In this document: positions 17,198-64,000 of the stretch, piece by piece | How the letters are laid out: the number at the start of each line of letters is the position of its first letter | How positions within the stretch are numbered: position 1 is the first letter of the stretch | Source: Phallusia mammillata | Taxonomy: Eukaryota | NCBI GenBank assembly: GCA_965637545.1 | Contig: OZ281496.1 | Coordinates: 26,040,001-26,104,000, forward strand | DNA: 64,000 bases | Direction of reading: 5' to 3' | Made by a program: the position numbers and the translations under genes | Notes under the pieces: model-generated | What the model was told of the DNA's origin: nothing | Databases searched by the model: none | The model's input: only the letters and a program-made list of their open reading frames with translations

Positions 17198-20100
17198 TTA
17201 TTGTACTAATTCTCCATCTTCAAAGTCCATCGACGAAGCCTCGATTAGGTCCCGGTTGGCATCAAGAACTTCCCCCCAGCGACGCTCGAAGAATTCCCGC
17301 AGATCGTGCCCAGCTCTCCCGATCGCTGATTCATCCTCGTTGTATGTTCGACAGTTGTCAAAAACGGTGCGCACCTCGGCCGAAAACATCTCATGGTTTT
17401 TGTACCTTTTACATATAATCGATATTTAAGTTTGCATGAAAATGGCCTTAGTCGGGTTTCGATATAAACCATACAGTACATCGAAGGTTCAACATAAGTG
17501 ATAAAAAGGTGTTGGGCTGCACAGTCTTAGCACGACCGATAACTACCACTTACGATGCTGGTTGAGATTTTTTTTGCCACACGTTTTTGTAACTAATCAA
17601 AGGCTATACTATTTGGGTTTCAGTTCATTTCTTGATCCGTACAATTTAGCGTTGGTGTAACATTGTTTAGTTGTTATATACGATAACAATTTTCAAAACT
17701 TGTAGTATATTGGTTTTGGTTTCTTACCTTCCCTTTTTTAGGCGATTTCCTATAGTGCTGAAGTCAATTGGCTTCTTAATTATTTTCTTGTAGTCAGGAA
17801 CCTCGTTTAAATCAACAGGATAAAGAAACCAGTTGGCGGAGTCGTGCGACTGAAGTTCCCGCAACATTTCGCTACAATCGTCAATGTGTGTTATCCATAA
17901 GCAGAATGGTCATTTTTTACACAATAGCAAGCAAATCAAAAATGCAGCTGTAATTTGGACTTTACGAAAGTAACAAAGTCTTAGATAAAGAAAATGACAT
18001 TTGTTACCTGAAAACCAGGACAAAAATCAGACTTTTTATATTACGTACAGGTAGGTGTACTCTTTTTCAGATTTAACAATGTTGATATTGGAGGTATTAT
18101 TTGTTTTAGCACTTCAAACGATCTAAATGTGATTAAGGCGTTAAAATCAGACGTTCGATGTCGAATTTGTAAAAAAAATCTTAAAATTTATAGGGTTTTT
18201 TTTAACATTACTTTATTGCAAGATTTTGGTAAATTGCATTTATTATAATAATCATCTATTTTAAGTTATATTATTTACTGCACGCGTAATCATTTAGTGG
18301 CACTTAGGAGCTTACCGACAGAAAGTAGTGTGAGACTTCTTCCGTTTTGCGGCCTTGTCACCCTAAAAACATAAATTCAATGTTTAAACAGTAAATTGAT
18401 CTCTTTTCTGAGTATCCATTGTTTCTGATGTTTTACAGCTCTTTATTATATTTATTTTTCAAATTGTGTTTTCAGATACTGATGCCTGTTACTTAGGTCA
18501 GTGGTCGGCAACCGCCGGTCCGCGAGGAGTTCGTTACCGGGCCGTATCATTTTCAGGGTAAATGCTTCATTTTCCTCGTGCATCCCGGGGATGATAAACT
18601 GATTTAGGCTTTTTTTGCTAAATATTTGCTGTTTATTGAAGGCCGGTGTGTGATAAAATTTCATTTTTAGAAACGGTGCACAGTGAAAAAAAGTTTACCG
18701 ACCCCTGACTTAGGTAATATATACATATATATCTTCAAAAAACGGTGAATGACTTCAGACTTAAAGTTTCCAGCATGTTTCTACCTTATCTTTCTCCTTG
18801 TCTTTGTCCTTCTTTTTCTTGCTCTTCTTTTTCTTCTTCTTGGTCTCGACCCCTGCGTCACGTGACCCGTGTCCGCTGACGTCACTCGTGCGACTCGTTT
18901 CGTCAGCGTAGACTTCGCTGCCGAACGGCAACGTCGATCCTACGTCATCGTGGTCGTCATCAGATCGCGTGACGTCATTGAGAGTCGACGAGTCGCATTC
19001 ATCCCTAGAAAAGTGTTTGTTGGTTGTTATTTAAATTTTTAATTCAAATTTACAAAGCTCTTTTTTTATGGCCTGAAACTACAGTATGACAAAAAATCTT
19101 CGAAAAAAAGATAGTGTGTGCGTGAATTGAAAGTTATGAGGAGTATAGAACCACACTTGATAATCATACTACTTTGTAACTCACATTTAAATGCAAATGA
19201 AAGGTTATTTATATAAAAACTTTGGGGTAAAGAAGCAATACTTAGGTACACAAGACACTAAAGGAAATTGCCAGCGATGTAGATTAAAACGTACAAATAA
19301 ACGTAGATTTTATTGAACAAACATTTCGACAAAAACAATTGCCGCCATCATCAGTGAAAAATGAATAATGCACAAGCGGAAATCTTCGTTTTATTCCACA
19401 TTGCTGGCAATTTTGTTTTTAGTAAAGGAAGCAATACGCCGTTACACATACCAGTTTTGGCCAATGAAGTTGTTATGTAGCACACTCTACCTTAATTTGT
19501 CGCCAGGCTTAAATATATCGGCAGTGTCAATTGGCATTCGTGCACTCATATGGGAACTCTCGTCTATGTAAAGTGGATCAGGCGTAGGTGAGTCCACTAT
19601 TTTGGATGAGGACTTCTTCTTTTTCGGCAAACTGGCTCCACTTGACGAAGTGGTCGTGGATTTAGAAGCCGGGCGGCGCTTCTTGGTTCGCGGACTGGCA
19701 TCGGAACGGGTGGATGACTGCAATGTTATATTCACGACGCAATATTATTTTGTGTTTTTTGTGACATTGTATTAGAAGTGTTAAAACGATTTTTGTTTTT
19801 TTCGCACTTACAAGTAAACTAAAGACGCCGGAAAAATATACTTCGTAACTGTTTAACCAGTGCCGTTTTTATTATCCCTGCAAAAACCTGTGTTTACAAA
19901 CTGTGAACTCTTAGGCTCAATTTTATTAAGTTACTTTCCAAAAAAAGTCTACCAGTCAAATATTTATATCATTGGTGTTTTAACTGCATAAGTGCTTTCT
20001 CCAATATTGCGTCTAATTCTAGCTAAAAGAACTAATAACTTAAATACCTACTAGAGACATAAGGACCTAGAGAGTGTTTTGTAATCAAACTTTTGTATTT

Positions 20101-29100: not shown

Positions 29101-32100
29101 GCATGTTCCACCCGGGCTCTGTAGCAACGAGATTAGAATCGATTGTGATGATTATTCAACAGTCTCATTTAGCTAATGACACAGGAAGGTCGTACGTGTC
29201 ATCAGTTGCATATTTTATTGCCTAATTACATTGAAGTGAAATTTACGTAACGTATTCCAAATATCAACGGGTATTTTTGTAAGGCAAGTCCAAGAGCATT
29301 TCTCAAAAATAAAGGGCAAATATTAAAATATATGTTTGTCTTTTATAAGAAAGCTAACAAATTTTAACCTGGAATTAAACGTTTCCAAACTTGTGGTAAT
29401 TGTATAATATGACAGTTGGATATCGTTACAGCAAAATGATTGAAAACTAGAATGGTGGCTTTCTGATATACTTCCATTTTATATCTTTTATACGATATTT
29501 ACCAATTTACTATACACATCATTTGATCTACACATATGATTGTTTTTGTAAACAAAAACTAATGGGTCCCCACATGCGTGTTTGTGCGGAGTTACGGTAA
29601 ACAAATGTTGCGGTGATTTTTAAATTCTTAAGAACAAATTTTTAGAAAGCGTTAACAAAACAATGAAAAATTTTGTTGTATTTTTTGGCACTATTATTGT
29701 CGTATAATTACAAAAACATTAAAAAAGAACGAAACAAATACTTTCAATTTAATCTCTTGCTTTGACCCAGATATTGTCGTCCAAGGTCGGGTTTTAAACA
29801 CAATTTTTTCTAGAAAGCTGTAACAGTTGTGTTACAGACAATTAAAAAGCGATTTGCCGCAAGTGTATACATCATTTAACTTTGTTTCGCAAAACGAGTT
29901 TTTCATTTAACTTTGTTTCGCAAAATGAGTACCATTGACCTGTAGGAACCTTTAGGGTGCACACACCAAACGACTGTTTGACCTTTTGACACCGTTTTCA
30001 ATAGCACGCCGTCCTTGGTGTTCAACAACACCGTTTGACCTAATTTATACATGCCTTGAGTATTTGATTAAAAAAAAACAAAAAAAAACGCTACGTGATG
30101 GCGAAAGAAAGTTCTGAACTGTGTTAGTAATACCTACTAATTGACCTTAAGTAACCCGCGGCCAACCTGACAACGAGCATTTAAAAAACTTTTATCTTGC
30201 AAAAAAGTCAAGTTTATTTTTTCATATTTAGTTTGTTTAACAAAGTTTTGCTTGACATTATACGAAACCGAAGCACGCTTATTAGGTTTAAATCGCGTCA
30301 TATGTGTGAAACCTTTGCCAAAACTGAAAATGTGAGTGATAACTTAATAAAACGACATAGCATTGCTGTGCAAAACAGCTGATTTCTAATCACCGAAACG
30401 ACGTCTCGTAAAACGTCTGTCCGACGTCAAGCTGAGCCCTCCCGCTCTGCCCTATTATTCGTAAACGTACTCTCTTGGGACTTCTGCCTACAGTGTCTTT
30501 CTTGACCAAACGAGCGTTAGACACATTTACGTTTCGGGGGCCTGTGGGTGTGTCGCTGGGTCATTCGGGGTCAAACTTCAGGTGGACCAAGTTCAGATTA
30601 ATATGTAACATATGTCCAAATTTCAATAAATTTGAAGCACTCTTTCTTTACTAAACAAGCGTTACAAACCAGCGTTAAAAATTTTACGTCTCGGGGGCCT
30701 GTGGGTGAACCGCTGGGTAATTTGGGGTCAAACTTCTGGTGGACCAAGTTTGAATTAATATCTAACATATGTCCAAATTTCAATAAATTTAAAGCACGCT
30801 TTCTTCACTAAACGAGCGTTACAGACCAGCGTTAAAAATTTTACGTTTCGGGGGCCTGTGGGTGAACCGCTGGGTAATTTGGGGTCAAACTTCAGGTGGA
30901 CCAAGTTTGGATTAATATCTAACATATGTCCAAATTTGAATAAATTTGAAGCACTCTTTCTTGACCAAACGAGCGTTACAAACCAGCGTTAGACAGAAAA
31001 AAGAAAAAAGAAAAAAGAAAAAAGAAAAAAGAAAAAAGAAAAAAGAAAAAAAGAAAAAAAAAATACGGACAAAAACAATATGTGTCCCCTTCAGGGAAGG
31101 GGACCCATAATAAATCAATTTATTACAATTTAAAATTCTTTAGGTAAAACGTGTTTTAAACTTTAAGTCGTTTTTAGTTTTTACAGATATTTAAAATACT
31201 TTTTGTCACCAAAACTGGTTAAATGTTTTTTTACCAACCCTGAAAAAACAGAACACATTTACAGGACTTTTGTAAACCATCAGAAACAACAAATTACAGA
31301 GATATTTTTGCTCTATAAAATATTTTTATCCTAAAAAATCCCCTTGAAAAAGGAAACTTACTGGCGAATTTTTCCTTCCACCACCCATTTGTCTCTGCGT
31401 AGTGAAGCTAGTTTTTCAAGATGTCGGTCGATATCAGCACAAACCGGTTGGCTACACACGAGTTCATTAACCAGAAACGCCAGGATTTCAGCCTTCTGAT
31501 CCCCGCTAAGTGAAGGGAAGGGTCTGGTCTCCAAGCAGAGGGCAAGCTGAAAAAATGCCAAAATTAAAACCCCGGTTTTGTTTTACTATTTTATGAGGCC
31601 GTGACTTTGGCTAATTCACTTTAAGTGCGCTGTAACACTATATACGTGTTATACATACGATGTCTATATCAACGCTACTCAACCTGGCGTACAGTAGACC
31701 CAAGGGTGTACTACAACAGTCACAGGGGTGTATTGGTATGGGTACCAAGCGTTTCTTAGGGGTTACACACATGTTAGTTACCAAATTAAGAAGTATAGCT
31801 GTGAGTAATTTGCAGGGTACAAATGATAATTCGCGTATCGCCATTTAACAACAGTTTTTAGGTTAAGTGTGATTTTTCAGAAATGTTGTATTCAAAACGC
31901 TTGGTTGGATTTGACAGCAGGTAAAAAGGTCGGATGGCAACAAACCTCGGTCTTATGTCCGTTTCGAGCCCATAAGAAAAGCCGCAAAATTTCAGAGTAA
32001 TTGCTTTTGCTCACATCAACATCAGTCACTTTCACACCAGTTGCACAATGAAGCTGAAGATGAAAATACATTGTAGTAAACACAGATGCCAAAAATACTT

Positions 32101-35100: not shown

Positions 35101-38100
35101 GTACGTATAGGAATCCACTGCAACATTATCTTATTTAAAACTGACTTTTTTGTAAAACACTATAGGCTACACCAGGGGTGGGCAACCTTTTTTACTGTGG
35201 GGCCAATTACAATTGTCAAAAATAGATCGCGGGCCGCACCTGTTATAACACAAGGTGATTTTACTTCGTTGCTTACAAATATGCTCAAATATAAGTATAA
35301 TTCGCATTTGATTCTAGCCACATTTTGCCAGGTCGCAGAAAACTGGCATCAGGCGCATTAATCTGCTTAAAAATATATAATAGTTCGTCTCGTTTGCCGG
35401 TACATTTGAAATCTAAGCGTCTCGGCGGGTCGCACAACCTTGAATCAAGGGCCGGAGGTTGCCCACACCTGGGCTACACGGATCTGTTTATAAGTTTAAT
35501 GACGAATATAACAGCACGAATAGACGTAAAAAGCAATCTGCTTTATTGTTCAAACGTTCGGCAAATGCCTAATGCCATCATTAAAGGTGTGATATGTTTG
35601 AACAACAAAGCATGTCGTTTTTAAATTCTGCTGTTTTATTCGTCATTTGGGCTGTTATTTTCGTCATTAGATTTTTTCAAGTTTAACATGTTCTTTAAGA
35701 CTAATAGAACAAGTTAAATACCTTGGGGTCTTGAAATTTAAAAACTTATATATACCTGTTGCTTAAACATGAGAGCTTGCTGTCTTTGCATCTCACGTTC
35801 CTGTAAAATTCAGCAAAAGCCTATTTAATTGTCTCAAGAAGTTTTGAAACTTTGAGCTTCGTTCAAATTTTGAAATTTCGTATGAAGAAGTTTAAAGGAA
35901 AGCGAGAACATACCTTAGCTTTCCGCAATGCCTCCTGGTATTTCATCTGCCTCGCCGCTTCTAGTTTTTGCCTTTCCTTTAACACAAACGACGTGTGTTT
36001 ACTATCAAAACTTTATCAATTATGGATCTAGTAAAAATGGAAACAAACCATTTTAACCCTGTTACATTCAATTTTTATAATAAACATTTGTCCGATTCTG
36101 GTGCATAATCGAATGCGTAGAGGATTTCACCCGAAATTAAAGCCTTTGGACTTTACCAGCATACTATACCGTTTACATATTTGAGATACGTTCGCAAACA
36201 TACTTGATTGCATCACCAAATGCAAATACGTACATGGTATATTTTCACAAATTCTTGGGCAGGCCCTAATACCCAGGTAGAAACACCTTTGAACGAACTA
36301 ACCTCAAGTAACTGTCTTTCCCGTAGTTCTCTCTCCGCCTTTTGTTGTTCAAGTCTCTGTTGTCGTTCCTTTTGCCGCAGAAGCTTCGCCAATCTTCGCT
36401 GTTCGTTCTTCTGTTGCAGCTTTAACTCGGCTGCACCCAACACATGTAAATGGCGTTAGTTGCACAAAAGCAAAATATTTAAGTGTTGCACCGTTTGTAT
36501 GCCTAGGATTAGAAGACGGTTACTTGTGACAACTACACCTACCTTTAATGCAACTGCACCTAAATAAAAAAATCAGAGCAAACACTCAAGTTGGATGCTT
36601 TGAAACAAAAAATCTGCGGATTAACCAGAGTTATAAGTCGGGTCGGGTTCGGGCTTTGTATTTTTACAAACATGTATGATTCGGGCTTGATTTCACATTA
36701 TGTGTCAGTAATTGTTTCAAATACAAATTACTGCAGCTAGTTTCTGGATATAACGTAATACCCAACATCCTTAACACGTCATTATTGTCTATTATTGTCC
36801 ATTGTGTAGGTCTTGTTTATAATAGGCCAGTCAATCAGGGCCCTAACGAGCTCCTCAAAAACGTCTCGGGTTCGGGTCGGGCTTATTCTTTCGGGTTCGA
36901 ACTCGAATTTCGAACCGGCCTACAACCCCTTGCTAAACAACGCATCCTAATGGCACAAATTTAAACTTGAAAAGCTAAAGCAAGTGCCTTTTGCGGTAAC
37001 TTCACGCAGCGTTTCAAACAAACTTAACGAAAGTTCAATTTTAAAAGGTTATAGCTTTTACATGTGTAACACCCGGATATGTGACATCAAAATCATATTT
37101 GGCCAAACACCAAACAGAAAACAGTAAAACAAAATACACTTGAGCACATCCCTTAATTTTAATCCCAATGCCTACCAGCTTGCTTCATGGCCTTCTGCCC
37201 AGCTTCTCGAAAGCAATGGTCTTCCAGCAGCTTCTGTGCATTCTGACTTAACGACGATCTATAGATTATATATAACCAATAAGACGAAGGTGTCGTTAAA
37301 CCCTCTATGACGCGCTTAGGCCTGCTAACTTATTCAAAGAAAAAAATTATAAAAGTACGTAATACAATATTACCTGTCGTGTCTATCATCGGTTTCAGAA
37401 TCTTCTGATTCGTAAACACCCAAACTTTCATCGAGTTTGGCAAAATACTTTTCAGCGTCTGGCGGGTTCAATTTTTTCCACTTGAAAAAAAAACACATAT
37501 AAATGGCACAAACAATACATTTACCCAGTTTTCCCGAAATTAATTTAAGTACAACCCTTCTATTTGGGCTTCCGTATTGTGTTACTGCTTATAATACGTC
37601 TTATGTTACTCAACGCACATACAACATCAAATAAAAACAGAATTTAACGTTTAAACATTAGTTTTTCAGAAAGAAGTCCAGCAACTCAAATACTTTTTTC
37701 AATTAGACGTATGAAATGGGTTAAATGACTCTGGTATAATATTAAGCACCTGTTCGTCTTCCCCGGGTGAAGGTCTGTGATAAAACGATCCGATTCGTAC
37801 GTTAGCAGCGAAACTGAAGTGATGCTGGCCAAATTTCGACTCGTTGCCATCGCTCAAGAGCTGCAAGGAATATGTATACCAAATATTTTAAATATTGAAC
37901 AGCTGTAAAAGGTATAAGTACGTTAGGCCCTTAGAAGGCGTTAAACTGAATCAGTCGGTCACCGAGCATTCCAATGTGACAAGGTGTAGGCTAGAAAAAA
38001 CTAGCCTGCGGTGGGATTCGAACCCACGACGGGAGTCTTTCTGGGACTCGCTCTCTACCCACTGAGCTACGCAGGCTCAGTGACAAACCCACCGAAAGTC

Positions 38101-47499: not shown

Positions 47500-48960
47500 G
47501 GTAGGGCAGGCGCTGTTGCTGGCAGTAATGGCTGACGGCGAACGTGATAAAACAGACGCAGCAATAACTATCATAAAACAAGACGCTTCTCTCTCTCTCA
47601 TGCGCAGTTAAACAGACAAAGAAATCGGTCTCGACATTCGGACAACCTAGCGCGTGATACCGACTGAATCGGTCTGAAAGCCCTTCACCAGTATGCCAAA
47701 CCTAACCTCAAACCACATCTAAACAAACGGGCTAAACTGTCAAATGCCCTTTTCATAACACCTGCCCGCTATCGCCTGTCGATGTAAGTAAACTTCCGCC
47801 GGATGTTTGTCATATTTTGCTTTCGTTTTCCTGCACAAAAAGTGGTTACATTTGCTGTTCTCCAGATGATATCAGGGCCAGCCCGCTGCGTGGCAAGAAG
47901 GGAAACGATTGCGCTGGCGCGGAGAGAAAGAGCGGGCGCTTTTAACAACACCGAAAAATAATCGAGCGTTACGACGAGACAGAAAATGAGTAGTAAGTAT
48001 GTAGTAGTGGCTCGATGTACCGCGCACTTAGCGCGCATGCGAAAGAAAACAAACCAAGGCACGTGTGAGTCTGACCGACGCGCGCGCCTGTTTTTGTGTG
48101 TGTTTGGCAATGCGAGCGCCCGTGACTATTTAGGAATAACAGAAACAAAGGGAGCGACCGCTCGCCCACTTTGCCGAACCAAGTCGGTGCACAGAGAAAG
48201 GAGGAAACGCGGTATTGCCACCGTGATCAATTAAAGAGGCAAAAGGGATAGACAGCTAGGGCCAGCGACTTGTCAAAGATACGCTTATTACACCAGGAAC
48301 AAACCGGGCCATTGCTTCAGTCGGAAGGGTATCTAGCGGGTTGGTGCAGGCCCACCCTGCATGGTGTGACGTGTTGGCCATACACAGGCATTGTAGCTGT
48401 TGGTTTTGGGGGCATTAAGACCGATTGCTTTCGTTACAGGTTATACAGCGATTAAGGTAAAAGATAGGCAACCGTAGGGCTTTTTGTTTCCTCGATAGCA
48501 CGGCGGTAGCAGTGGATTCCCTTGAAGCGAGGTAAAGTCGCGCTTTTAGGCTGCGGCTTGTCTCGAGACAGATGGCACCGTGTGCGTGACGTTGTCGAAT
48601 TGTCGAGGTGCAATGTATTTCTTTCTCTCGCTCGCCGGGGCGATGATGCTGTTGCTGAATGACAGACCGCTTTGCCTTGCCTCGTCGCCCGTTCGCTCGT
48701 GATCACGCAGCGTTGGTGTGATGAAAGCAAACCGAAAAGTCGACCTCGTGAATCTCGAAGCAAATGATGTCACAAAAAGCCGTCGTGAGGGATTGGCCAT
48801 TACGCCGCGCGCCATGTAACTGCCTGACTTGCACGATTGGGGGATAAACTGTACAGGTCGCTATGAAACCAGGCGCCCGCAATGAAAACACTGCTGGGCG
48901 TTTCGGGAAAGCAAAGCACTTGTACCGCAGGTTTCTATTCGACCCACATGTGTTCTTTAC
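47500..48960 (-). promoter_or_regulatory. CpG/GC-rich putative promoter and 5' region of BAZ2
   Basis: Local rise in GC and CpG in an AT-rich window, 2-3 kb upstream of the BAZ2 start codon. CCAAT-like (ggccaatc), GC-box/E2F-like and tgacatca motifs on the minus strand. No coherent coding exon found. Confidence 0.5.
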
Positions 48961-51471
48961 CCTTGCACAGCGGGACCATGTTTTTAGAAACATTGTTTAT
49001 TTTGGCAATGCATGTTGGTAAACAAGGGTTGATCTGTTTCTTACTATAGTATTATTTCCAACGCCGCTAAGTTATCTGATTTGTATTCCCAAATTCCTTC
49101 ATATGTATATGTATTACACACATGTAGTTTCTATAGATAACGTTGAAAAGTAGCTAAAACCGAAACTTTATTTGAAGTGTTATTTGCACGAAGCTAATGT
49201 ATTTGCCAATTTGACACCTTGTGTTTAAATCTCCAACCTAAACCAGAAATAACGCTATAGCAGCTTCCAGAGTTTATATAGAGCAGCTTCCAACGTTTAT
49301 ATAGAGTTTCCCAGAATTAAAAACGTTTAATTCATTCGCACCAACGGCCTAGATGTGTGAAAATTTACTTTTGAGATGTTTCAACTTCGACGAACTTTAC
49401 GCGAATGTTTTTTACATTAAAGACGTGTATTTTGGTTAAAATCGTGTGTTTTATAACCTGTGTTTCTGCACCTCGTTTGTCCCCCCGCTACTGTTTACAG
49501 AGGGTTATGTACCAATGTGCACTGGGTAGACTGTTTCATACAGACCAAGATAAATAAAGTGAGGTATATCCACAAAGCGGCTCAGTTGAATTTATGGTGT
49601 TATTTATTCACCCTGGCTTGGTGTGTTTAACATCCAGAGTTTTCATTAAAAAATATGCCAATTTAAATTCTTTGCGTATTTTTGTTTGTGCAGTAGCTGT
49701 AGTATGAAAGTGGTTTGCCTAAACGGAATTTAAACCCTTAGGGTTTGTTTCACATTAAATTGGGTAACCTAGTAACAAGGTAATTTTCTTAAAGTTTGAA
49801 TGCTAAATTATACATGGTTTGCTAATAACTTACTACAAACCGTTACAAACAACATAATTCACACCATTAACAACTATTAAACTATTCATAACCACGTTGT
49901 TAAAAATAAAGCAAGTAATTACATAAGCAGACCTTGATAAGCGATTAAGCACGCCCAGCGGCATACTTATGCGTTAAATTAGGACATGTACAAACTTGGG
50001 GTCTTTTGTGCATTAGGTATTAGAGACAACGGCTGTTTTTTAAGAATCGGAAATATTACATATTTTGCAACTAGTTTCAAATAATCAGTTCCCATTAAAT
50101 CATAGCGGTTAACATCGTAAAGTAGGTTGAATCCCACGAGGTAAATTATGATAATGACAGACCTGTCGCCTTGTTTTGTGTTGCTCAGTTAATTGCGCTT
50201 TATTGCCATCAAGTGACAAATACTAAACATGTGTTAGAACGCCAAGTGTCGCAAGCGAAACGTAAGTGATGACCCAGTTGCTGATCTACTAGTCCAGTAG
50301 TTCTCAACCTGGGGTACGTGTACCACTAGTGGCAGGCCGGAACTTTTAAATTGGTACGCGAGTAGGTTTCTGCTATACCTAATTCAAGTACCATTATAAA
50401 ATGGAACTTTACTCTCCTAACTGATCAGCGCTAGTTTGGGGCAAAACTTCTTTTTGGAATTTGCTAATCTTGCTGGTTTTACAAATACACTGTCGAAGTC
50501 AAAAATGCAGGCTTATTTCTTGGTTTACCCATTTAATCATGGTTAAGGTGCTATACGCAGCAATAGATAAAGGTCGTTAGGTGGTACGCCATCAGTAGAA
50601 GGTTAAGTACCACTGGACGCTTTGAAGAACATGACACAATATTCTTTCACTTGACTTGTACCTAATTTATGTTTTTGTTTTTTATTGTTTTGCTGCCCAA
50701 ATAGGATAGTGCGTAGTTTTGACCTTGTTAAGTGTGGTTGTAACTAAAGTTGCAAAAGTTGCCCATACTGCATTTTTTGTACAGAAAAAAATTAAATTCG
50801 AATTAGGCGCGAGCAATAGTTTTACCCAGGTAAAGTTACAACAGCAACGTGACCGAGTGTGAAGTCAGGCGCAATTGAAACCGTTTTACTTAAACTTAAA
50901 CCTAAATCGAACCTGAACCCGACCCGTAAAACTCGGCAACACCCACAACACTTGAAAACATGTACTTGATTGAATACGGATTAGAACCCGCAACCCGCAG
51001 GTTGCACGTTTACGTAATTACCACTTGGCCATATGTTTCCATTGCCTTGTAGTATAGCTGCAAGATCAGTTTCGACTTGCGTGTTATGTAATACGACACT
51101 ATTGCCAACTTTTGAATTTGGTGGTTTTTTAACCTTTTTGTAAACGCCCAATGTTTGTCGTACACTTCATATCGAAAGAGGCAATAAAACAAAAGTTTTT
51201 AGTTTTCTGAATTTAGCTGAAATCTACCTAAAAGCGTACCTCAAAGAATCCACTGGTGTACAGATTTAAGTGCTACCATTAATAAATTTATTTTGTATAT
51301 TTGTTTCACCTGATTTGTACATAAATGCCGAAAAATCATTAAACAATTGTTATTTCGCTTAACATTAGAAAACACTTACGTTAAGCTGTTCAAAAATATG
51401 TAATAACGTTACAAAATATGACTGGTAAAGGTTAGTAGTCGATGGAAATGCCATGATCGGATCCTTAAACT

Positions 51472-52993
51472 TTAACAACCGCCGCCAAAAATAGAGTAAC
51501 AGCTGCTTGTGTGGCGACATACATGCATTTGACAACGCAGGCAAGGAATGAAATCTGTAAAACAAACTTAAGTGGTTTCACGGAATTGACAAGCAACAGG
51601 TGATAGAATTTCCCATAAATGGAGGGATAGACTTTCTAATTGCCGCATGTCTGCATTTGAACCACAGACCACCACCGCAGAATATTTGAAAACAGAATAT
51701 ATACGGTTAAAATTCCGCGGACAGTTCATAGAACATTTAGCCATAGCTGACTTAGAACAAACCACAGAGTATATTTTCTACCTTTACGCACGATTCGCAA
51801 GCATTAATTAAATCGAGTGGCGTCCAATCCACAGGGAATTGTAGGTAATTTTTGTACATTTATGTCGTTTACTCATTTTACATTGAAGCAATTCACATAT
51901 TTTTTAATTGCATTTGAACAAGGTACACATATAGTTGGTCTCAAATTTCCTTTGCTAAAAAAAGACGTTTTTTCATAAAAGAAGTGTTGCCACTTAACGC
52001 TTTCACATAATACACACAAATAGTCTCCAAGCCATTGAATCAAGTGTTTATAAGTGTGCTGGTTTGGAATGAGTATCATAAGCTAAAAACAGGCATAACA
52101 AAAACTTTAACTTTTGACATTTGTAAATAAAAAGTCCTAAAAAAGAGTGTACAAGTTAAAAAAAAGGAAAAAAAAGTTTTAAACCATCGATTTCAACAAA
52201 TTGGTAAAACACTTGTGCGCGAATGCTGGGTGTATGCTATAGATAATACATTTGATCATTTGTAGCGATGACGAATTAGTGTGAGACATAGGGTCAAAAA
52301 AATGTGCCTAATATCAATGACACCCACTTTGATAATGGTCCCCCCATACAAAACGTATTGTTTTCTCAACTTAAATTAACAGTAGATAGTGCGTGCTTTT
52401 TTTTTGAAAAAAACTTACGCCTTGCGTGTTGGCAATTCCAACCAGTTTCAATCCACTCCTTACTGCAATACGAGTAAATGCATTTTCGGAAAAAGCGCGT
52501 GCTGCTGAGGCCTGCACAAAAAGTTTGGAAGTAAATGTTTATGAACATTTTGAATGGTTTTTAAATAAGTAATTGAAGCCAAAGCTGGTAATTCGACATG
52601 AAAACATGCCTAAAACTTTGTGCTTTAAACTAGTGATGCACCGAACCCACCTCAAAAGGTTCGGGCGAATAATTTTGGCCAAATAAGGCCGCATCAAACA
52701 CCCCCCTTTTGATTGATGTTTTCAATTAAACCCTGTGTTGTTGACATAAAGGAACTGGTTTATGACATCCCAAAGTCGCTCACACAAGCTTTGCTAAGCT
52801 GCTAATATTTTGCAGACAAGGTGACTTGTATTTTTTAGATGCAGTAATCAGGTAATTCATGATTTTTATATTCGCGATTTTGAAAGTTTTGGCATTAATT
52901 TCATACAATTAAAAAGTCCGGCATATTAAAAAAACGGCATGTTCGGCCGAAATGTTTCGGCCAACCGAAACTTCGGTGCATCACTACTTTAAG

Positions 52994-53026
<33 letters not shown>

Positions 53027-53246
53027 TTAAACCAATTCGATTTAGCCCCACCAATACCTTTTGCGTTACACAAAACAATTTGATTTGCTGGGAAAATAAA
53101 TACGCGAAATACAAGTTATGGCAGACTACGGGAAGTAAGTTATGGAGGAAAATACAGGTTTCAATAAATTTCTTACCCTTTTCGCTGGTGATAATAACAA
53201 AACGCGTCATGACCATCGCAATGGTATTCAAAGTACACATTTTCAT
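51472..53246 (-). CDS. Small 8-Cys putative secreted peptide, copy 1 (81 aa, family not recognised)
   Basis: Exons 53246-53177 (ccaaccATG; G|gtaaga), 52511-52419 (tgtgcag|...C|gtaagt) and 51554-51472 (ttttacag|...TAA). 70+93+83=246 nt. Protein MKMCTLNTIAMVMTRFVIITSEKGLSSTRFFRKCIYSYCSKEWIETGWNCQHARHFIPCLRCQMHVCRHTSSCYSIFGGGC*. AATAAA on the minus strand at 51292-51287. Confidence 0.78.
52631..52986. mobile_element. hAT (Ac-like) MITE in intron 1 of the peptide gene
   Basis: TIRs tagtgatgcaccgaa / ttcggtgcatcacta; partial TSD ctttaa. Followed by (ATCA)n. Copies at ~55488-55843 and starting ~62741. Confidence 0.8.
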
Positions 53247-54328
53247 GGTTGGTTCAAGGCAGATTTTGTTAACGTGTTGAAAACAAAACTGAAACGCATG
53301 GAAATATTTTCGGTTTAAACAGTATTTGAACTTTTATATGTTTGCTAACATGCGCGAAAGCTTTTTCTTTCACGCGACAAAGTGTAAAAAAATAACGAAT
53401 GATAAAAGTGTCTTGATATTTTTCTAATGTTTTTTCTATGAGTACGTTTTTTCGATGCGGCAACTTCTGGAATTTTTTAGCAACGATTTAGCAAACGTAC
53501 GCATGCGAATTTAAACGCAAACTTATTTATTTTAAAAGAAAAAAGTAACTAAAATGAATCAAAAAAGCAGATGCTCGTTTGTTTTAACAAATAGGGACTC
53601 TTAATCATTCTTTCATTAAATTCTATACTGACTTACGTAAAGCAAATGCAGTAACATGAAACTAAAAATGTTCATAATAAATATTTATTATTTTTCCTAT
53701 ATAGGTCATATCCAATTATTAACAAGATTAGATTGTGTTTTAATCCTTACAAAAATTTGCATTTGCACAATTAGGCCTATAAGCAATTTTGTTTTGATAT
53801 AGTTATTTCTTGTACTCCTGCAATGGCAAATCCTAGTTTAAAAAAATATGTCGAAAATCGTCTACGTTCTAAGAAAGCTTCACACCTGCACCAAAAAATC
53901 TAAAGACACCTGCGAAATTCAAGACTGAGTCGGTTTTTAAAAAATTTGCGACACACTATTGCCAACTTTTGAATTTGGTGGTTTTTTAACCTTTTTGTAA
54001 ACGCCCAATGTTTGTCGTACACTTCATATCGAAAGAGGCAATAAAACAAAAGTTTTTAGTTTTCTGAATTTAGCTGAAATCTACCTAAAAGCGTACCTCA
54101 AAGAATCCACTGGTGTACAGATTTAAGTGCTACCATTAATAAATTTATTTTGTATATTTGTTTCACCTGATTTGTACATAAATGCCGAAAAATCATTAAA
54201 CAATTGTTATTTCGCTTAACATTAGAAAACACTTACGTTAAGCTGTTCAAAAATATGTAATAACGTTACAAAATATGACTGGTAAAGGTTAGTAGTCGAT
54301 GGAAATGCCATGATCGGATCCTTAAACT

Positions 54329-56099
54329 TTAACAACCGCCGCCAAAAATAGAGTAACAGCTGCTTGTGTGGCGACATACATGCATTTGACAACGCAGGCA
54401 AGGAATGAAATCTGTAAAACAAACTTAAGTGGTTTCACGGAATTGACAAGCAACAGGTGATAGAATTTCCCATAAATGGAGGGATAGACTTTCTAATTGC
54501 CGCATGTCTGCATTTGAACCACAGACCACCACCGCAGAATATTTGAAAACAGAATATATACGGTTAAAATTCCGCGGACAGTTCATAGAACATTTAGCCA
54601 TAGCTGACTTAGAACAAACCACAGAGTATATTTTCTACCTTTACGCACGATTCGCAAGCATTAATTAAATCGAGTGGCGTCCAATCCACAGGGAATTGTA
54701 GGTAATTTTTGTACATTTATGTCGTTTACTCATTTTACATTGAAGCAATTCACATATTTTTTAATTGCATTTGAACAAGGTACACATATAGTTGGTCTCA
54801 AATTTCCTTTGCTAAAAAAAGACGTTTTTTCATAAAAGAAGTGTTGCCACTTAACGCTTTCACATAATACACACAAATAGTCTCCAAGCCATTGAATCAA
54901 GTGTTTATAAGTGTGCTGGTTTGGAATGAGTATCATAAGCTAAAAACAGGCATAACAAAAACTTTAACTTTTGACATTTGTAAATAAAAAGTCCTAAAAA
55001 AGAGTGTACAAGTTAAAAAAAAGGAAAAAAAAGTTTTAAACCATCGATTTCAACAAATTGGTAAAACACTTGTGCGCGAATGCTGGGTGTATGCTATAGA
55101 TAATACATTTGATCATTTGTAGCGATGACGAATTAGTGTGAGACATAGGGTCAAAAAAATGTGCCTAATATCAATGACACCCACTTTGATAATGGTCCCC
55201 CCATACAAAACGTATTGTTTTCTCAACTTAAATTAACAGTAGATAGTGCGTGCTTTTTTTTTGAAAAAAACTTACGCCTTGCGTGTTGGCAATTCCAACC
55301 AGTTTCAATCCACTCCTTACTGCAATACGAGTAAATGCATTTTCGGAAAAAGCGCGTGCTGCTGAGGCCTGCACAAAAAGTTTGGAAGTAAATGTTTATG
55401 AACATTTTGAATGGTTTTTAAATAAGTAATTGAAGCCAAAGCTGGTAATTCGACATGAAAACATGCCTAAAACTTTGTGCTTTAAACTAGTGATGCACCG
55501 AACCCACCTCAAAAGGTTCGGGCGAATAATTTTGGCCAAATAAGGCCGCATCAAACATCCCCCTTTTGATTGATGTTTTCAATTAAACCCTGTGTTGTTG
55601 ACATAAAGGAACTGGTTTATGACATCCCAAAGTCGCTCACACAAGCTTTGCTAAGCTGCTAATATTTTGCAGACAAGGTGACTTGTATTTTTTAGATGCA
55701 GTAATCAGGTAATTCATGATTTTTATATTCGCGATTTTGAAAGTTTTGGCATTAATTTCATACAATTAAAAAGTCCGGCATATTAAAAAAACGGCATGTT
55801 CGGCCGAAATGTTTCGGCCAACCGAAACTTCGGTGCATCACTACTTTAAGACAATCAATCAATCAATCAATCAATCAATTTAAACCAATTCGATTTAGCC
55901 CCACCAATACCTTTTGCGTTACACAAAACAATTTGATTTGCTGGGAAAATAAATACGCGAAATACAAGTTATGGCAGACTACGGGAAGTAAGTTATGGAG
56001 GAAAATACAGGTTTCAATAAATTTCTTACCCTTTTCGCTGGTGATAATAACAAAACGCGTCATGACCATCGCAATGGTATTCAAAGTACACATTTTCAT
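54329..56099 (-). CDS. Small 8-Cys putative secreted peptide, copy 2 (coding sequence identical to copy 1)
   Basis: Exons 56099-56030, 55368-55276 and 54411-54329, inside the second unit of the 2.86-kb tandem duplication. Confidence 0.75.
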
Positions 56100-58489
56100 G
56101 GTTGGTTCAAGGCAGATTTTGTTAACGTGTTGAAAACAAAACTGAAACGCATGGAAATATTTTCGGTTTAAACAGTATTTGAACTTTTATATGTTTGCTA
56201 ACATGCGCGAAAGCTTTTTCTTTCACGCGACAAAGTGTAAAAAAATAACGAATGATAAAAGTGTCTTGATATTTTTCTAATGTTTTTTCTATGAGTACGT
56301 TTTTTCGATGCGGCAACTTCTGGAATTTTTTAGCAACGATTTAGCAAACGTACGCATGCGAATTTAAACGCAAACTTATTTATTTTAAAAGAAAAAAGTA
56401 ACTAAAATGAATCAAAAAAGCAGATGCTCGTTTGTTTTAACAAATAGGGACTCTTAATCATTCTTTCATTAAATTCTATACTGACTTACGTAAAGCAAAT
56501 GCAGTAACATGAAACTAAAAATGTTCATAATAAATATTTATTATTTTTCCTATATAGGTCATATCCAATTATTAACAAGATTAGATTGTGTTTTAATCCT
56601 TACAAAAATTTGCATTTGCACAATTAGGCCTATAAGCAATTTTGTTTTGATATAGTTATTTCTTGTACTCCTGCAATGGCAAATCCTAGTTTAAAAAAAT
56701 ATGTCGAAAATCGTCTACGTTCTAAGAAAGCTTCACACCTGCACCAAAAAATCTAAAGACACCTGCGAAATTCAAGACTGAGTCGGTTTTTAAAAAATTT
56801 GCGACACAAAAAAGGTAGAAAATGGGGCCGGATTTTAAACGCAAAACGCTGTTTTTTCAGCATGTTGTGTTTTGTGCAATCACTAAACAATGTTGGGCTT
56901 TTCCAAATTGGTTATGTTTTCTAAAAAAAAATATTTAAGCTTACTTCGTGTTCCGAATAAACAAATGTAAAAAGAAATAAGAAAAAAATACCTTAAACCT
57001 ATCGCTAAACATTTGAGTGCTATTTTAGTACAAAAATCTGCAAAATACAAATCAAATGTTTTGTTTTTTATTTGGGTATATTTTCACTTTTTTATGCCAC
57101 CTGAACTAGAATAGTTTAATTGTGTGTATTCTTTTTAGCGTAGTCTAAATGTTTTTTTCCTAAAAACTAAATGCCACCGGAACAACATGAAATATTGTAA
57201 CTTTGTAGCTCAAACGATTCAACTAAACCAGGGGTGGGCAACCTGCGGCCCGTTGGGCCAAATGCGGCCCTTCAATAAAGGTTGTGGGGCCCGCAGAGAC
57301 GCTTGGATTTTGAATGTACTTGCAAACGAGTCCAACTACTATATATTTTTGAGCAAATTAATGCGCCTTGATGCTAGTTTTCTGCGACCTGACAAAATAA
57401 GGCTAGAATCAACTGCGAATTATGATGGTATTTGGGGATATTTGGTAAGCAACAAAGTAAAATCACCTTGTGTTATACACAGCTGCGGTCCGCGATCCAA
57501 TTTTTACAATTGTAATTGGCCCCACACTAAAAACGGTTGCTTGTAACCCACAACTGAACTAAACTATTGCCTTCATCAGCAAAGTACTGTATGTTAAGTC
57601 TAATTGATGGGGCATCGAGTATTATAAGCAACTTAAAAAACTTATTATAAGCAACTTTAATGGTCATCTTTATTCTTGGTTAAGCTACTCTTTCTTCGTG
57701 TTCTGTGTACCTAATATATTTAAATCTGTGCACAAATTTGGCCCACATCATGTGCAACAGTGTTAATCTTAACATGTTATACTGAAGTTAGAGGTGTTAT
57801 CAGAAAAGGGAGTGTTTTTAAGACCAAGACAACAAACGCAAACGACAATTCATCTTAAAAAATGTGTTTTAGGGCTGTTTGATATTAGGTCAGGTACAGC
57901 AACTAGCTAGTTAAATGTATTTTTTTTACAATACTGAGACGGAGTGTGAAGTCAGGCGATATATCAAGTCGTTTTTTTGGAAAAAAGACCTAAGCCCGAA
58001 CCTGGCTCTAAAAGCCCGGCCCGACTTACAACTCCGGGGCGTAAAGTCTTTTGTTGTGGGAACTACCATTAAAATTAAATAATTTAAGATTTAACAAAAG
58101 TAGGCAGCACACACTGTAAATCAAAAAGGTGGTTTTATAGCATTTTGACCACCTTTTCGGGTGCAATTTTGGTGCACCAACACATTATTTTTTAATATAA
58201 AAGAAGTCTAGAAAACTATATACAGATCAGTACCAAAGTGTAATGAGAAAAATACCGGTCAAAATAGACGTAAAAGCGACATGCTTTATTATTGAAACGT
58301 TTCGGCCAATGCTAATGCCATTACAAGTGATAGTCACATAGCTAAAAGATTAATAAAAAGGTGCAAACGCGTATGAATAATAAAGCAGGTGGCTCATTAT
58401 GTCTGTTTGGGCCGTTATTTTCCTCACTGAGTTTAGCAAACTTGTGCAATGTTAATGTGATTGGTGAGACTGTTTATGATAGCCTATAT

Positions 58490-58723
58490 CAGGGGTCGGC
58501 AACCTTTTTTGCACTGCGGACCGGTTTTGAAAGTAAAATTTTATCGCGGACCAATCTTCAAAAAATTACAAATATTTAGCAATGAAAAGCCTAAATTAGT
58601 TTATCATCCCCGGGATATATGGGCAAAATGCTTCATAGCATTTATCCTGGAAGATCATGCGGCCCGGTAACGAACTCCTCGCGGACCGGTACCGGGCCGC
58701 GGACCAGCGGTTGCCGACCACTG
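58490..58723. mobile_element. hAT-type MITE
   Basis: TIRs caggggtcggcaacc / ggttgccgaccactg; TSD gcctatat. Confidence 0.9.
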
Positions 58724-60196
58724 GCCTATATGACATCAAGGGTCGGCAACCTTTTCTGAAGGACGGTTTAAAACTAAAATTTTATCGCGAACCGGCCTTT
58801 AAAGAAACAAAAAATGATCCGCAATTAAAATTTATTTCAGATCATGTAAGTCATCACGATTTTGATTCAATGAGAACCTCAAACTTGTTTTGCCGCAACG
58901 AGACGCTCTCACTTAGGCATCATGTTTCGAATAATTTAACCTGAAAAAGAGTATAGCCTGGTCTCCCATTGAGGGCGCCACACCTAATCAGCCGGTCACC
59001 AAGCATTCACCACCATATGGCAAGGCGTAGGCTAGAATAATCTAGCCTGTGAATAGATTCGAACATTGTTTATTTTGGCAATGCATGTTAGTAAACAAGC
59101 ATTGATCTGTTTCTTAATATAGTATTTTTTTCCCATGCCGCTAATCTGACTTGTATTCCCAAATTCCTTCATATGTATATGTATTACACACAGAAGTTTG
59201 TATAGATAACTTTGAAAGTCAGTAAAAAACAAAACGTTATTTAATGTTTTATCTGCATCTAGCTAAAGTGCTTGCCATTTTCACACCTTGTGTTTAAATC
59301 TCTAACCTAAACCTGAAATAACGCTATAGCAGCAGAGTTTACCAGAATTAAAAACATTTAATTCATTCGCACCAACGGCCTAGATATGTGAAAATTGCTG
59401 TTGAGATGTTTCAACTTCGACGAATTTTACGTGAATGTTTTTTACATTAAAGACGTGTATTTTGGTTAAAATCGTGTGTTTTATAACCTGTGATTCTATG
59501 CCTCATTTGTCCCTGCGCTATTGTTTACAGAGGGTTATGTACCAAATGTGCACTGGGTAGACTGTTTCATACAGACCAAGACAAATAAAGTGAGGTATAT
59601 CCACAAAGCGCCTCAGTTGAATTTATGGTGTTTTATTTGATCACCCTGGCTTGGTGTGTTTAATATCAAGAGTTTTCAATAAAAAATATGCCAATTTAAG
59701 TTCCTTACGCATTTTGGTTCGTGCAGTAGCTGTAGTAACTTATAAAAGTGGTTTGGCATAAACGGAATTTGAACCTTGTAAAATTAGGGTTTGTTTCACA
59801 TTAAATTGGGTAACCTATAGTAACAAGGTATTTTGCTTAAAATTTGAATGCTAAATTATACGTGGTTTGCTAATAACTTACTACAAACCGTTACAAACAA
59901 CATAATTCACACCATTAACAACTATTAAACTATTCATAACCACGTTGTTAAAAATAAAGCAAGTAATTACATAAGCAGACCTTGATAAGCGATAAGGGTT
60001 AAGGACGCCCAGCGGCATACTTATGCGTTAAATTAGGACATGTACAAACTTGGTGTCCTTCGTGTATTAGATAAGATACAACCGCTGTTTTTAATGAATC
60101 GGAAATATTACATATTTTGCAACTAGTTTCAAATAATCATAGCCATTAACAACGTAATGGAGGTTGAATCCCACGCGTAAATAATTTCAATGTCAG

Positions 60197-60392
60197 CAGT
60201 GCCGGATTAACCATTAGGCAAAGTAGGCACGTGCCTACAGGCCAGTCAAAAATCCAGGCCTCTTGAAAATCAGTAGACTTTGTGACAATGATTTGGCAAC
60301 ACTGATTATTCTAATTTTTTAGCTGGCAACCCTGATTTTCGGGCCACTTGTAACATGTGTCTACAGGCCAGCAGACCCTTAATCCAGCACTG
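60197..60392. mobile_element. hAT-type MITE, present only in the right-hand paralogous segment
   Basis: TIRs cagtgccggattaa / ttaatccagcactg; TSD aatgtcag. The paralogous site near 50153 carries a single aatgacag. Confidence 0.9.
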
Positions 60393-61737
60393 AATGTCAG
60401 ACATCCTGCTTTGTTTTGTGTTGCTCAGTTAATTGCGCTTTATTGCCATCAAGTGACAAATATTAAACATGTGTTAGAACACCAAGCGTCGCAAGGGAAT
60501 GGAAAATAAGAGATAACCTAGTTGCTGTTCGATTAGTCCAGTCGTTCTCAACCTTTGGTACACGTACCACTAGTGTTACGCCGGATCTTTTAAAATGGTT
60601 CGCTATTTCTGATATACCTAATTCAAGTAACATCATGAAATTGAACTTTCTGACCCAACTGATCAGCCCTGGTTTGTGGCAAAACTTGTGTCTTGGACAT
60701 TCGTTTGGGACGGCCAACCTTGTTGGTTTTGGAAATATACTGCCCTAGTCAAAACTACAGGCCTACTTCTTGGTCTACGCATTCAAACAGGGTTAAGGCG
60801 GTATGCGCAGCAATAGATAAAGTCGTCAGGTGCTACGCCATCAGTATAAGGATAAGTACCACTGGACGCTTTTTAGAACATGACAAAATCTTATTTAACT
60901 TAACTTATACCTAAATTATGTTTTGGATGTTTTTTTTTTTTTGTTTTTTTATGCCCACAATTGAATAGAGCATAGTTTTGACCTGGTCAAGTGTAATTGT
61001 AACTAAACTTGCAAGATGGGCCCAAGCAGTTGTTTTTTTCAGAAAACATTAAACCAGAATTAGGCCCGAACATTAGTTTTACCTATGTTAAGTTACAACA
61101 GCAACGCGACGGAGTGTGAATTCAGGCCCGGTTGAAACTGATTTACTTGAACTTAATCCTGAATCGAACCTGAACTTTTACAACTCTTGAAAACATTGCC
61201 TGTACTTCATTGAACCCTTCGACTTTTTTATCTTTGGTTTCTAACTCAGACAAATCTAAGCGTTCGAAACGGATTAGAACCCGCAAATCGCAGGTCGCAT
61301 GTAAATGCCACTTGGCCATATGTTTCTATTGCGGTAATTGCAAAGAGCAGTTGACTTGCGTGTTATGTAATACGACATTAGGTGGTTTTTAACCGTTTTT
61401 GTAAACGTCCAATGTTTGTCGTAAACTTCATATCGAAAGAGGCAATAAACAAAAGTTTTTAATTTAGAAATTTAGAAATCTACGTAAAAGCGTACCTCAT
61501 AGGATTAAGTGCTACTATTAATAAATTTATTTTGCATGATTGTTTTCACCTGATTTGTACATAAATGCCGAAAAATCATTAAACGAATGTTATTTCAAAG
61601 AGTGAAGTGCTAGACTTATCGTTTGACATTAGAAAACACGTACGTTAAGGTGTCAAAAATATTAAATAACGTTTATACAAAATATGACTGATATAGGTGC
61701 GCAGACGATGGAAATGCCATGATCGGATCCTTAATCT

Positions 61738-62655
61738 TTAGCAACCGCTGCCAAAAATGGAGTAGCAGGTGCTTGTGTGGCGACATACGTGCATTTGACA
61801 ACGCAGACAGGGAATGAAATCTGTAAAACAAACTTAAGTGGTTTATCGCATTCGACAAGCGTATAAAACAACAGGTGATAGATATTCCCACAAAGGAATG
61901 GATAGTCTTTCTAATTGCCGCATGTGTGCACTTAATGATTCACCACTTCAGAATTTTCAAAAACATAATATACGGTTAAGTTCGTGGACAGGTTTTAAAC
62001 ATTTGGCTTTTATTGGCCTATAGAATAAACCACAGATTATGTTTTCTACCAAAATGGAGGATTCCATTCGTATTGCAAGCATCAATTAACTCCAGTGGCG
62101 TGGGAAATTGTATGCATTTTTTTACTTTTATGTTGTTTTCACATTTTTCATTGACGCAATTCACAGTTGTTGTTGTTTTTAGATAAGTCAATAAAAATCA
62201 AAAATAAAGTAAAAATCTTTTGAAGAAAAAAAATACATTTAATGTTTTATAAAAATCAATAAAACAATATAACTACAGTATTTCTATTTTTTCCTGATCG
62301 GAAAAACTAGTGTGCGAATGCTAGGTGTATGCAACAGATAATACAACTTATCAGCTACAGTGCTATTTTTAAGTGATATTGTATAGCGATGATAATTTAG
62401 TGTGAGGCATAGGGTCACAAAAAATGTATCAATTGCAACCATTTTGTTTAATGGTCACCCAAAACAAAACGTATTGTTTTCTCAACTTAAATTAACAGTA
62501 GTAATCGATGGGATATAACCTGCCGTGTGAGGTATAGTTCGTGTTTTTGTACAAAAACTTACGACTTGCGTATTGACAATTCCAACCAGTTTCAATCCAT
62601 TCCCTACTGCAATACGAGTAAATGCATTTGTAGAAAAAACGCGTGCTGCTGTGAC
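61738..62655 (-). CDS. Small 8-Cys peptide, diverged copy 3 (exons 2-3; first exon not found in the window)
   Basis: Exons 62655-62563 and 61820-61738 have the same sizes and splice sites as copies 1/2. Translation GHSSTRFFYKCIYSYCSREWIETGWNCQYASHFIPCLRCQMHVCRHTSTCYSIFGSGC*. Versus copy 1: 10 synonymous and 7 non-synonymous codon differences, no indels. Confidence 0.75.
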
Positions 62656-63303
62656 CTGCACAAAAAGTTTGGAAGTAAGTAAATAAGTTGTTTAAGTCAA
62701 GGCTGGACATAAATATGCCTAAAACTGTGTGCTTTGAACCAGTGATGCACCGAACCCGCCCCAAAAGGTTCGGGCCGAAACCGAGTATTCGGCCATCAGG
62801 CCAAATTATTTCGACCGAACTAGGCCGAATCTAAAATCCCCTTTCTGATTGGTGTTTTTAACTAAAACCCTGCATTGTTGATATAAAGCAGTGGTTCTTA
62901 TCTTTTTTTTTATTGTCCGGGCCAAATGGTAGTTTTTTTAAGTGCATAGGGAGCCGCAAAAAACTCGAGACCTCAGAAAAATCACTGCAGATTATTACCT
63001 TGAAAACTAGAATAGCAATCTTTGTCGTTTTCTGAGGTCTGGTGCGAGCCGCAAAATAACTAGTTGGGATACGGCCCTGCGGTTGATATAAGGATATACT
63101 GATATATTGGAACTGATGGTATATGACACCCCAAATTCCCTTTCTCAATGCACAAGCTGTGTTAAGCTTAAGTATTTTGCAAACAAGCCCAATCAGAAAT
63201 TTATCGCTACCCCAAGTTTGATTTATCCATAAATTATCGATAAGTCATACATGGGCAGTTGTTATAGTCCATGGATAAAAATGGGATAGACACTTGTTTA
63301 TAC

Positions 63304-63407
63304 CAGTGTTTCATACCGGAACGGAACGAAACCAAATAACGTTATTCGTTCTGAGCAAATCATTTATTTCGTTCCGGTATAACGTTCCGTTCCGGTATGA
63401 AACACTT
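63304..63407. mobile_element. Short foldback MITE
   Basis: Long TIRs cagtgtttcataccggaacggaacg / cgttccgttccggtatgaaacactt; TSD gtttatac. Confidence 0.85.
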
Positions 63408-64000
63408 GTTTATACCCCTGAAATTTGACATCGGCGGTTTGATGGCCCACACGTGCATTATGCACTGCGCAAGTACGATAACACTTGGGTGTTCCAAACA
63501 TAAATATGTTAAAATTAAGATAACCCTTACATGTCCCAAGCCTAAACACGACAAAAGTACATACTTCTTTACCTCGGCGCATCGCAAAAATGACACAACA
63601 TATTTATTTCGTACACTTTGTATTAAAAAGAACATTTCGCTTTCAATCAATGCTGCCAGTGATGCCCGTAGTGCACGTCCATATTCTATTCTCCAGCTCT
63701 TGTTCACCGTGTGATAAAACATCTGTAAAGAGAATGACTGCATAGTTAGTTCAGACTTCTGAAACTTACACATGTGATGAGAAAAATAAAAGACTAAACC
63801 GATTTGCTGAAAAGTAGACGCCGTAATTCTGCAACTTATTACACACATAAAACTATTTGAGTCTATTTTGTTTCAACACAGTTAGTTAAAGGAACTTGAA
63901 CATACAAACCAAGAACTTACCACTTATAACGACGATGTACATCACGCTTTCCCAAACCTATGCTGATACGTTTTTTGATTGAAGATTCTAAATAATTCCA

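Follow-up and report, generated by a model that had tools for sequence, protein, structure and literature searches.

The 64,000-nucleotide (nt) stretch of Phallusia mammillata contig OZ281496.1 analysed here (the window) probably contains, in the region 51472-62655, a compact (~2 kb), unannotated and lineage-restricted protein-coding gene for a small cysteine-rich peptide. The gene would be of a known kind, with a cysteine framework that is possibly new. Three short exons on the minus strand join into one open reading frame (ORF), and exons 2 and 3, when compared with an older and diverged copy of the gene, carry a signature of purifying selection in that frame. A real and selected coding gene appears likely. 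The fuller proposal, a real gene that encodes a small cysteine-rich and probably secreted peptide, strikes us as evenly balanced, and that the predicted product is both secreted and disulfide-bonded is plausible, leaning slightly towards doubt. If real and expressed, the gene represents a new cysteine framework among the secreted peptides of invertebrates.

Gene model and codon-level comparison of the copies

The three exons of copy 1 (Table 1), joined in silico and then translated, combine in frame (70 + 93 + 83 nt = 246 nt) to an ORF of 81 amino acids (aa) followed by a TAA stop codon. The junctions, 53177/52511 and 52419/51554, are exactly those proposed in the first-pass annotation, a reading of the same DNA that preceded our analysis. 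Both introns (665 and 864 nt) are in phase 1. The splice sites, called strong at first pass, have the donors G/GTAAGA and C/GTAAGT (the slash marks the exon end) and acceptors in which CAG or ACAG follows a T-rich tract. The G+C content of the coding sequence (44%) exceeds that of the introns (34-36%), and the start codon stands in the context ACC-ATG. Among the ATG-to-donor candidates within 1.4 kb ahead of exon 2, exon 1 comes first, and its promoter is plausible. Phase-1 introns, together with a hydrophobic first exon that ends just before the cysteine-rich part, are the usual layout of secreted peptide genes. Short multi-exon genes, with each exon below 35 codons, slip past ORF-based and homology-based annotation, as this gene illustrates.

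Cysteines occupy residues 4, 34, 39, 50, 59, 62, 67, 73 and 81 of the ORF, the last eight of them within the final 48 residues, and no two are adjacent anywhere in the chain. From residue 34 onwards the framework reads C-X4-C-X10-C-X8-C-X2-C-X4-C-X5-C-X7-C and ends on the terminal Cys, which reproduces the spacing reported at first pass. Residues 25-81, which exons 2 and 3 encode, form a part of 57 aa with a mass of 6.7 kDa and an isoelectric point of 8.9. This part is rich in aromatic, His and basic residues, as had been noted, and carries a net positive charge (9 aromatic residues, 4 His, 7 Lys+Arg, 2 Asp+Glu and 8 Cys). Consistent with a secreted disulfide-rich peptide, the number of invariant cysteines is even, all 8 being the same in copies 1 and 3.

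The evidence for selection comes from the comparison of copy 1 with copy 3 over exons 2 and 3 (176 nt). Copy 3 retains both acceptors, the donor, the position of the stop codon, ~35 nt of the 3' untranslated region, and the AATAAA signal with its surroundings. Within the two exons, 19 of the 176 nt differ and there are no insertions or deletions (indels), whereas intron 2 of the same pair has 21.4% mismatches and 22 gap openings in ~950 columns. The whole-codon changes comprise nine synonymous and seven non-synonymous ones, and a further change, in the split codon 24, would count as synonymous, which agrees with the earlier count of 10 and 7. Third positions hold 11 of the 18 in-frame substitutions, and the synonymous excess is strongest in exon 3 (six against two non-synonymous changes). 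All eight cysteines are kept, four of them with a swap between TGC and TGT, and the stop is the same, again as first described. By the Nei-Gojobori method dS is 0.40 and dN 0.06, corresponding to an omega of 0.16 (Fisher p 2e-4), whereas the other five frames either reach an omega of 0.7 or more or are interrupted by stops. A second frame that is open over exons 2 and 3 (frame 0, minus strand) has an omega of ~2 and is therefore not the coding frame.

Because transitions make up 14 of the 18 in-frame changes, we ran a spectrum-preserving permutation, in which the observed substitution types were re-dealt over the sequence. The probability of seven or fewer amino-acid changes was 0.009, and that of the same outcome with all cysteines kept and no stop was 0.0012. 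As an empirical control, we collected all stretches of at least 26 codons that are open in both copies, on both strands of the ~4-kb paralogous alignment. Among the 18 shared open stretches the frame of exon 3 ranks first (p 0.0008) and that of exon 2 second (p 0.056). Exons 2 and 3 are thus under purifying selection in the proposed frame, as the first reading had concluded; the signal, which comes from one comparison, is real and modest.

Searches for relatives and comparison with known peptides

Searches were run exon by exon with queries of ~30 aa, so their sensitivity is reduced. With exon pieces of copies 1 and 3 and E values up to 10, hmmscan against Pfam returned nothing at or above the gathering score, and no piece matched a defensin, macin, big defensin, WAP, Kazal, ShK, Ly6/uPAR or toxin family. 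The sole toxin-family signal, a 9-residue match of exon 2 to Toxin_18, the conotoxin O-superfamily (E 0.12; 12.9 bits against a cut-off of 24.3), was judged to be due to chance; members of that superfamily have an adjacent cysteine pair, unlike the peptide described here. PSI_PSAK on exon 1 (13.9 bits against a cut-off of 23.2) also stayed below the threshold. Profiles of exons 2 and 3 found nothing significant among the PDB sequences (best E 0.58), a word-indexed search among proteins of 35-112 aa, with the 64-aa stretch between the stops around exon 2 as the query, returned nothing, and metagenome scans with alignments of exons 2 and 3 found no relative. When exon 2 was compared with 1.84 billion representative proteins using phmmer, one match was obtained (P0001, E 2.6e-4), a 1989-aa subtilase with ~12 PEGA repeats. 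We rejected it as a repeat-inflated chance match, because the similarity is weak, recurs and involves no aligned cysteine. A full-text pattern search of the literature for the cysteine spacing found no matching described framework.

These blank results carry limited weight, because the queries were ~30 aa long and other exons and ORFs of the window were equally blank: two of its ORFs had no exact counterpart on record, and neither a 255-aa ORF nor the exon carrying the WSD motif returned a homologue, so that the species seems to be out of reach of the collections searched, run assemblies included. The length window applied to homologues (0.55-1.75x) shuts out full-length multi-exon proteins. 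The earlier statement that the peptide matches no known family stands as far as exon-wise searches go; the novelty attached to it is not established from pieces of 30 aa.

Among the known families compared, the SCRiPs are nearest in size and cysteine count. SCRiPs occur in stony corals and sea anemones and have a pre-protein of 68-83 aa with eight cysteines, three of which are adjacent in the C-terminal region (PMC10892658). The likeness extends to the size of the pre-protein (81 aa here), to eight cysteines in a short mature part that follows an N-terminus which is hydrophobic in SCRiPs and moderately so here, and to the multi-copy, lineage-restricted nature of the genes (PMC10892658). In contrast to SCRiPs, the peptide here has no adjacent cysteine triplet, and its mature part would be up to 57 aa long, compared with 40-48 aa. 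The exon profiles did not match the solved SCRiP-type structures 7LX4 and 5LAH (PMC10892658) in the search of PDB sequences at E up to 10. We therefore do not assign the peptide to the SCRiPs: the length of 81 aa fits, and the N-terminus is moderately hydrophobic with an Arg, but the cysteine framework is a different one and exon-wise similarity was not found.

Invertebrate host-defence peptides, such as CS-alpha-beta defensins, macins, big defensins, WAP/crustins and ShK-like peptides, are small and cationic, contain 6-10 cysteines, and are encoded by genes with a signal exon and a mature exon that often lie in tandem. The predicted peptide is of the same general kind, but has no significant Pfam match per exon, and the full-text search gave no described framework with its spacing (X4, X10, X8, X2, X4, X5, X7) and terminal Cys. 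New cysteine frameworks without homologues are regularly met in invertebrates, where transcriptomics has revealed orphan venom or secretory scaffolds such as the remipede xibalbins of 'unknown fold' (PMC5577568). Xibalbin 7, which is IGFBP-like, starts with C-x2-C-x4-C-x5-C, like the part encoded by exon 3 (PMC5577568). We consider this a short coincidence, because the scaffold of xibalbin 7 continues with ten more cysteines at other spacings. An IGFBP-like cysteine domain (at least 12 Cys; C-x2-C-x4-C-x5-C-x8-C) was rejected as well, with only the first three spacings coinciding, the chain ending after the X7-Cys, and no match to Pfam IGFBP. Xibalbins are backed by expression and proteomics; the present gene is predicted from sequence.

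Points against the gene and alternative readings

Several observations weigh against a real gene with a small cysteine-rich, probably secreted product, and they are given here with the alternatives on which they bear. The first group concerns the existence of the predicted gene, for which the exon-wise searches found no homologue that would lend it a fold or a function. The evidence for selection amounts to 18 substitutions in one independent comparison, because the coding sequences of copies 1 and 2 are identical. Exon 2 by itself is not significant (p 0.056), most of the signal coming from exon 3. Furthermore, a non-coding block (48989-50130 / 59062-60200), located 1.3-2.5 kb downstream, is better conserved between the duplicates than the exons are (7.8% versus 10.8% mismatch; 92% versus 89% identity), with one stretch of ~170 nt that contains a single mismatch. 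Shared ORFs in the block do not exceed 37 codons, Rfam gives no match to it, and the window has no copy of it besides these two. Its conservation could be caused by gene conversion, by a later duplication or by a constrained regulatory or RNA element, and it makes patchy gene conversion possible. Because this non-coding block is conserved more than the exons, low divergence alone is no evidence of coding here; the evidence lies in the codon-position pattern.

These observations would fit a locus without a functional gene, in which the frame is a chance ORF in duplicated DNA, its low divergence and codon pattern being due to patchy gene conversion, mutation bias and luck, or the remnant of a recently dead gene. 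Such an explanation gains from the inspection of six frames in a single comparison of 18 substitutions, from the block 48989-50130 being more conserved than the exons, from the lack of any resembling protein for exon 2 among the 1.84 billion representatives, and from the lack of a first exon for copy 3 in the window. We nevertheless consider it quite unlikely. The spectrum-preserving permutation still yields p values of 0.001-0.009, the exon frames take the first two places among the 18 open stretches, the exons are free of indels while the introns are full of them, and nothing has been lost of the eight cysteines, the stop, four splice sites and the poly(A) signal. A dead copy 3 would shift omega towards ~0.5 or more, whereas 0.16 was observed.

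The second group concerns the 5' end. Exon 1, and with it the signal peptide, is without comparative support, because its sequence does not differ between copies 1 and 2 and copy 3 lacks it. Decayed pieces of an element resembling a miniature inverted-repeat transposable element (MITE) near copy 3 imply that intron 1 is homologous between copies 1 and 3 up to ~63187; the element predates the duplication that separated these copies. Beyond ~63187 neither exon 1 nor the promoter was found to have a homologue for copy 3 in the sequence up to base 64000, and exon 1 of this copy may have been lost, may have been replaced or may lie outside the window. A candidate whose donor scores equally well arises by chance in the unrelated DNA upstream of copy 3. 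The two stretches 63582-63531 and 63942-63921, considered as exon 1 of copy 3, do not surpass chance expectation, and a 162-aa ORF (63360-63848) has no Pfam match and no recorded protein and looks non-coding.

It is unlikely, with a chance that deserves consideration, that exons 2 and 3 are coding while the 5' end of the model is wrong or incomplete, so that they follow another N-terminal exon or form the end of a larger protein. In one such arrangement of four exons, translation would start at ATG 53675, and a GTAAGT donor after 53637 would be joined to a tttcag acceptor before 53288, in frame with ATG 53246, to give 108 aa. The N-terminus of this product is more hydrophobic than that of the 81-aa model, and the four-exon model is otherwise unsupported. 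A wrong 5' end would agree with the missing comparative support for exon 1, with the perfect GTAAGT donor of the alternative upstream exon and its in-frame polypyrimidine-CAG acceptor into exon 1, and with the constraint on exons 2 and 3 of copy 3 in spite of the missing exon 1 homologue in the window. On the other hand, the TATAAAAG box would then fall in an intron, the sole TATA-like motif upstream of ATG 53675 is ~20 nt away from it, and each 2.86-kb tandem unit is self-contained. A larger protein is further disfavoured by the absence of Pfam domains from the ORFs of 75 codons or more that lie between the copies or upstream of them, and by the conserved stop and AATAAA, which close the gene at its 3' end.

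The third group concerns the fate of the product. The best 9-residue Kyte-Doolittle mean of the N-terminus is only 2.1, an Arg interrupts the hydrophobic stretch, there is no clear small-residue cleavage site, and a dibasic site ahead of the first cysteine is lost in copy 3. The signal-like N-terminus described at first pass is thus moderately hydrophobic, but weak, and belongs to the exon that lacks comparative support. A protein that is real and not secreted, being intracellular or membrane-anchored, Cys/His-rich and able to bind metal (zinc or other) through C-X2-C, C-X4-C and His clusters, would accommodate the weak N-terminus. Spacings of the C-X2-C and C-X4-C type are common in metal sites, and three of the four His, located within exon 3 or on its boundary, adjoin cysteines and persist in copy 3. 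We judge a metal-binding protein improbable all the same: the remaining His is lost in copy 3, neither exon matches a Pfam family of zinc fingers or metal-binding proteins at E up to 10, and the gene layout and tandem duplication appear typical of secreted peptide genes.

For the secreted peptide that we prefer, we hypothesize that exon 1 supplies a cleavable and rather weak secretion signal, and that the eight cysteines form four disulfides, which would result in a small, stable and cationic secreted peptide. Its role may be in host defence, toxin-like or in signalling, in line with other invertebrate genes for small cysteine-rich peptides that are tandemly duplicated; any single one of these functions, which had been suggested at first pass as antimicrobial, toxin or signalling, is unlikely at best. 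The secreted peptides of invertebrates have been a recurrent source of host-defence molecules, toxins and signalling ligands. Genes for orphan cysteine-rich peptides are a frequent feature of animal genomes, and the finding is therefore unsurprising in kind.

Duplication history and neighbouring features

The two tandem units that carry copies 1 and 2 differ by one single-nucleotide polymorphism and one 4-nt microsatellite indel, and each includes a complete gene that runs from its TATA-like box as far as its AATAAA signal. The tandem repeat 51096-56808 reflects a very recent duplication, or else an error of the assembly. In the window no further copy was found, either with tblastn at E 100 or with regular expressions for the cysteine pattern in six frames. 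The 'expanding family' of the first-pass annotation therefore reduces to one very recent tandem duplicate, possibly an artefact, and one older copy without a visible first exon. We hold only tentatively, and with more doubt than belief, that the region contains an undescribed four-disulfide scaffold that is limited to one animal lineage, has been missed by annotation pipelines and would be amplifying by tandem duplication. The flank of copy 3 contains ~210 nt of extra DNA (~60200-60400) relative to position 50158 near copy 1, probably a small inserted element.

Besides the peptide genes, the window holds a TSP1-domain gene, a BAZ-type chromatin gene and a tRNA-Ser gene. The peptide genes share the orientation of a GC-rich, promoter-like stretch (48400-48960) and are located upstream of it; this stretch, which contains a CCAAT motif, may be the promoter and 5' end of the BAZ-type gene.

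Table 1. Positions of the peptide gene copies, associated elements and other features in the window
Feature	Position	Strand	Details
Copy 1 exon 1	53177..53246	-	70 nt; ATG at 53246; moderately hydrophobic N-terminus; phase-1 donor GTAAGA
Copy 1 exon 2	52419..52511	-	93 nt; both ends in phase 1; contains Cys 1-3 and two Trp; polypyrimidine-CAG acceptor, GTAAGT donor
Copy 1 exon 3	51472..51554	-	83 nt with TAA stop; Cys 4-8; final residue Cys
TATA-like box TATAAAAG, copy 1	53331..53338	-	85 nt upstream of copy 1 ATG; a motif with putative function
AATAAA poly(A) signal, copy 1	51287..51292	-	180 nt past stop
Copy 2 exon 1	56030..56099	-	identical to copy 1
Copy 2 exon 2	55276..55368	-	identical to copy 1
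Copy 2 exon 3 with stop	54329..54411	-	identical to copy 1
TATA-like box TATAAAAG, copy 2	56184-56191	-	counterpart of copy 1 box
AATAAA, copy 2	54144-54149	-	
Copy 3 exon 2	62563..62655	-	11 differences from copy 1 in 93 nt, 0 indels; acceptor and donor kept
Copy 3 exon 3 with stop	61738..61820	-	8 differences from copy 1 in 83 nt, 0 indels; same stop position
AATAAA, copy 3	61526-61531	-	surroundings conserved
Tandem units	51096-53952 (2857 bp) and 53953-56808 (2853 bp)	.	head to tail, 99.8% identity
Older duplicate carrying copy 3	59062..62888 versus 48989-52751	.	70-85% identity by segment
MITE-like element	52625..52992 (copy 1 intron 1); 55482-55849 (copy 2)	.	368 bp, 21-nt terminal inverted repeats
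MITE-like remnants, copy 3	62734-62888 and 63100-63187	.	decayed pieces upstream of exon 2
TSP1-domain gene, tandemly triplicated	1-16200	-	units ~190-3904, 5730-10762, 12171-16143
TSP1 exons	700-1059, 6243-6572, 12956-13318	-	two TSP1 repeats each
TSP1 and EGF-like part exons	3615-3983, 10512-10760	-	
BAZ-type chromatin-remodelling gene	17201-22527, perhaps up to ~48900	-	bromodomain piece 17201-17425; WSD motif 22153-22527
tRNA-Ser (anticodon AGA)	38002-38077	-	ARAGORN and Rfam

Other repeats were observed in the window. The segments 24258-25887 and 29445-31114 are duplicates with 82% identity and contain internal tandem repeats of ~158 nt (25319-25789 and 30507-30991). Two pairs of inverted dispersed repeats, 35182-35465 / 57254-57540 and 18515-18714 / 58483-58689, have 80-85% identity and are likely fragments of transposable elements; one member of each pair is located between copies 2 and 3.

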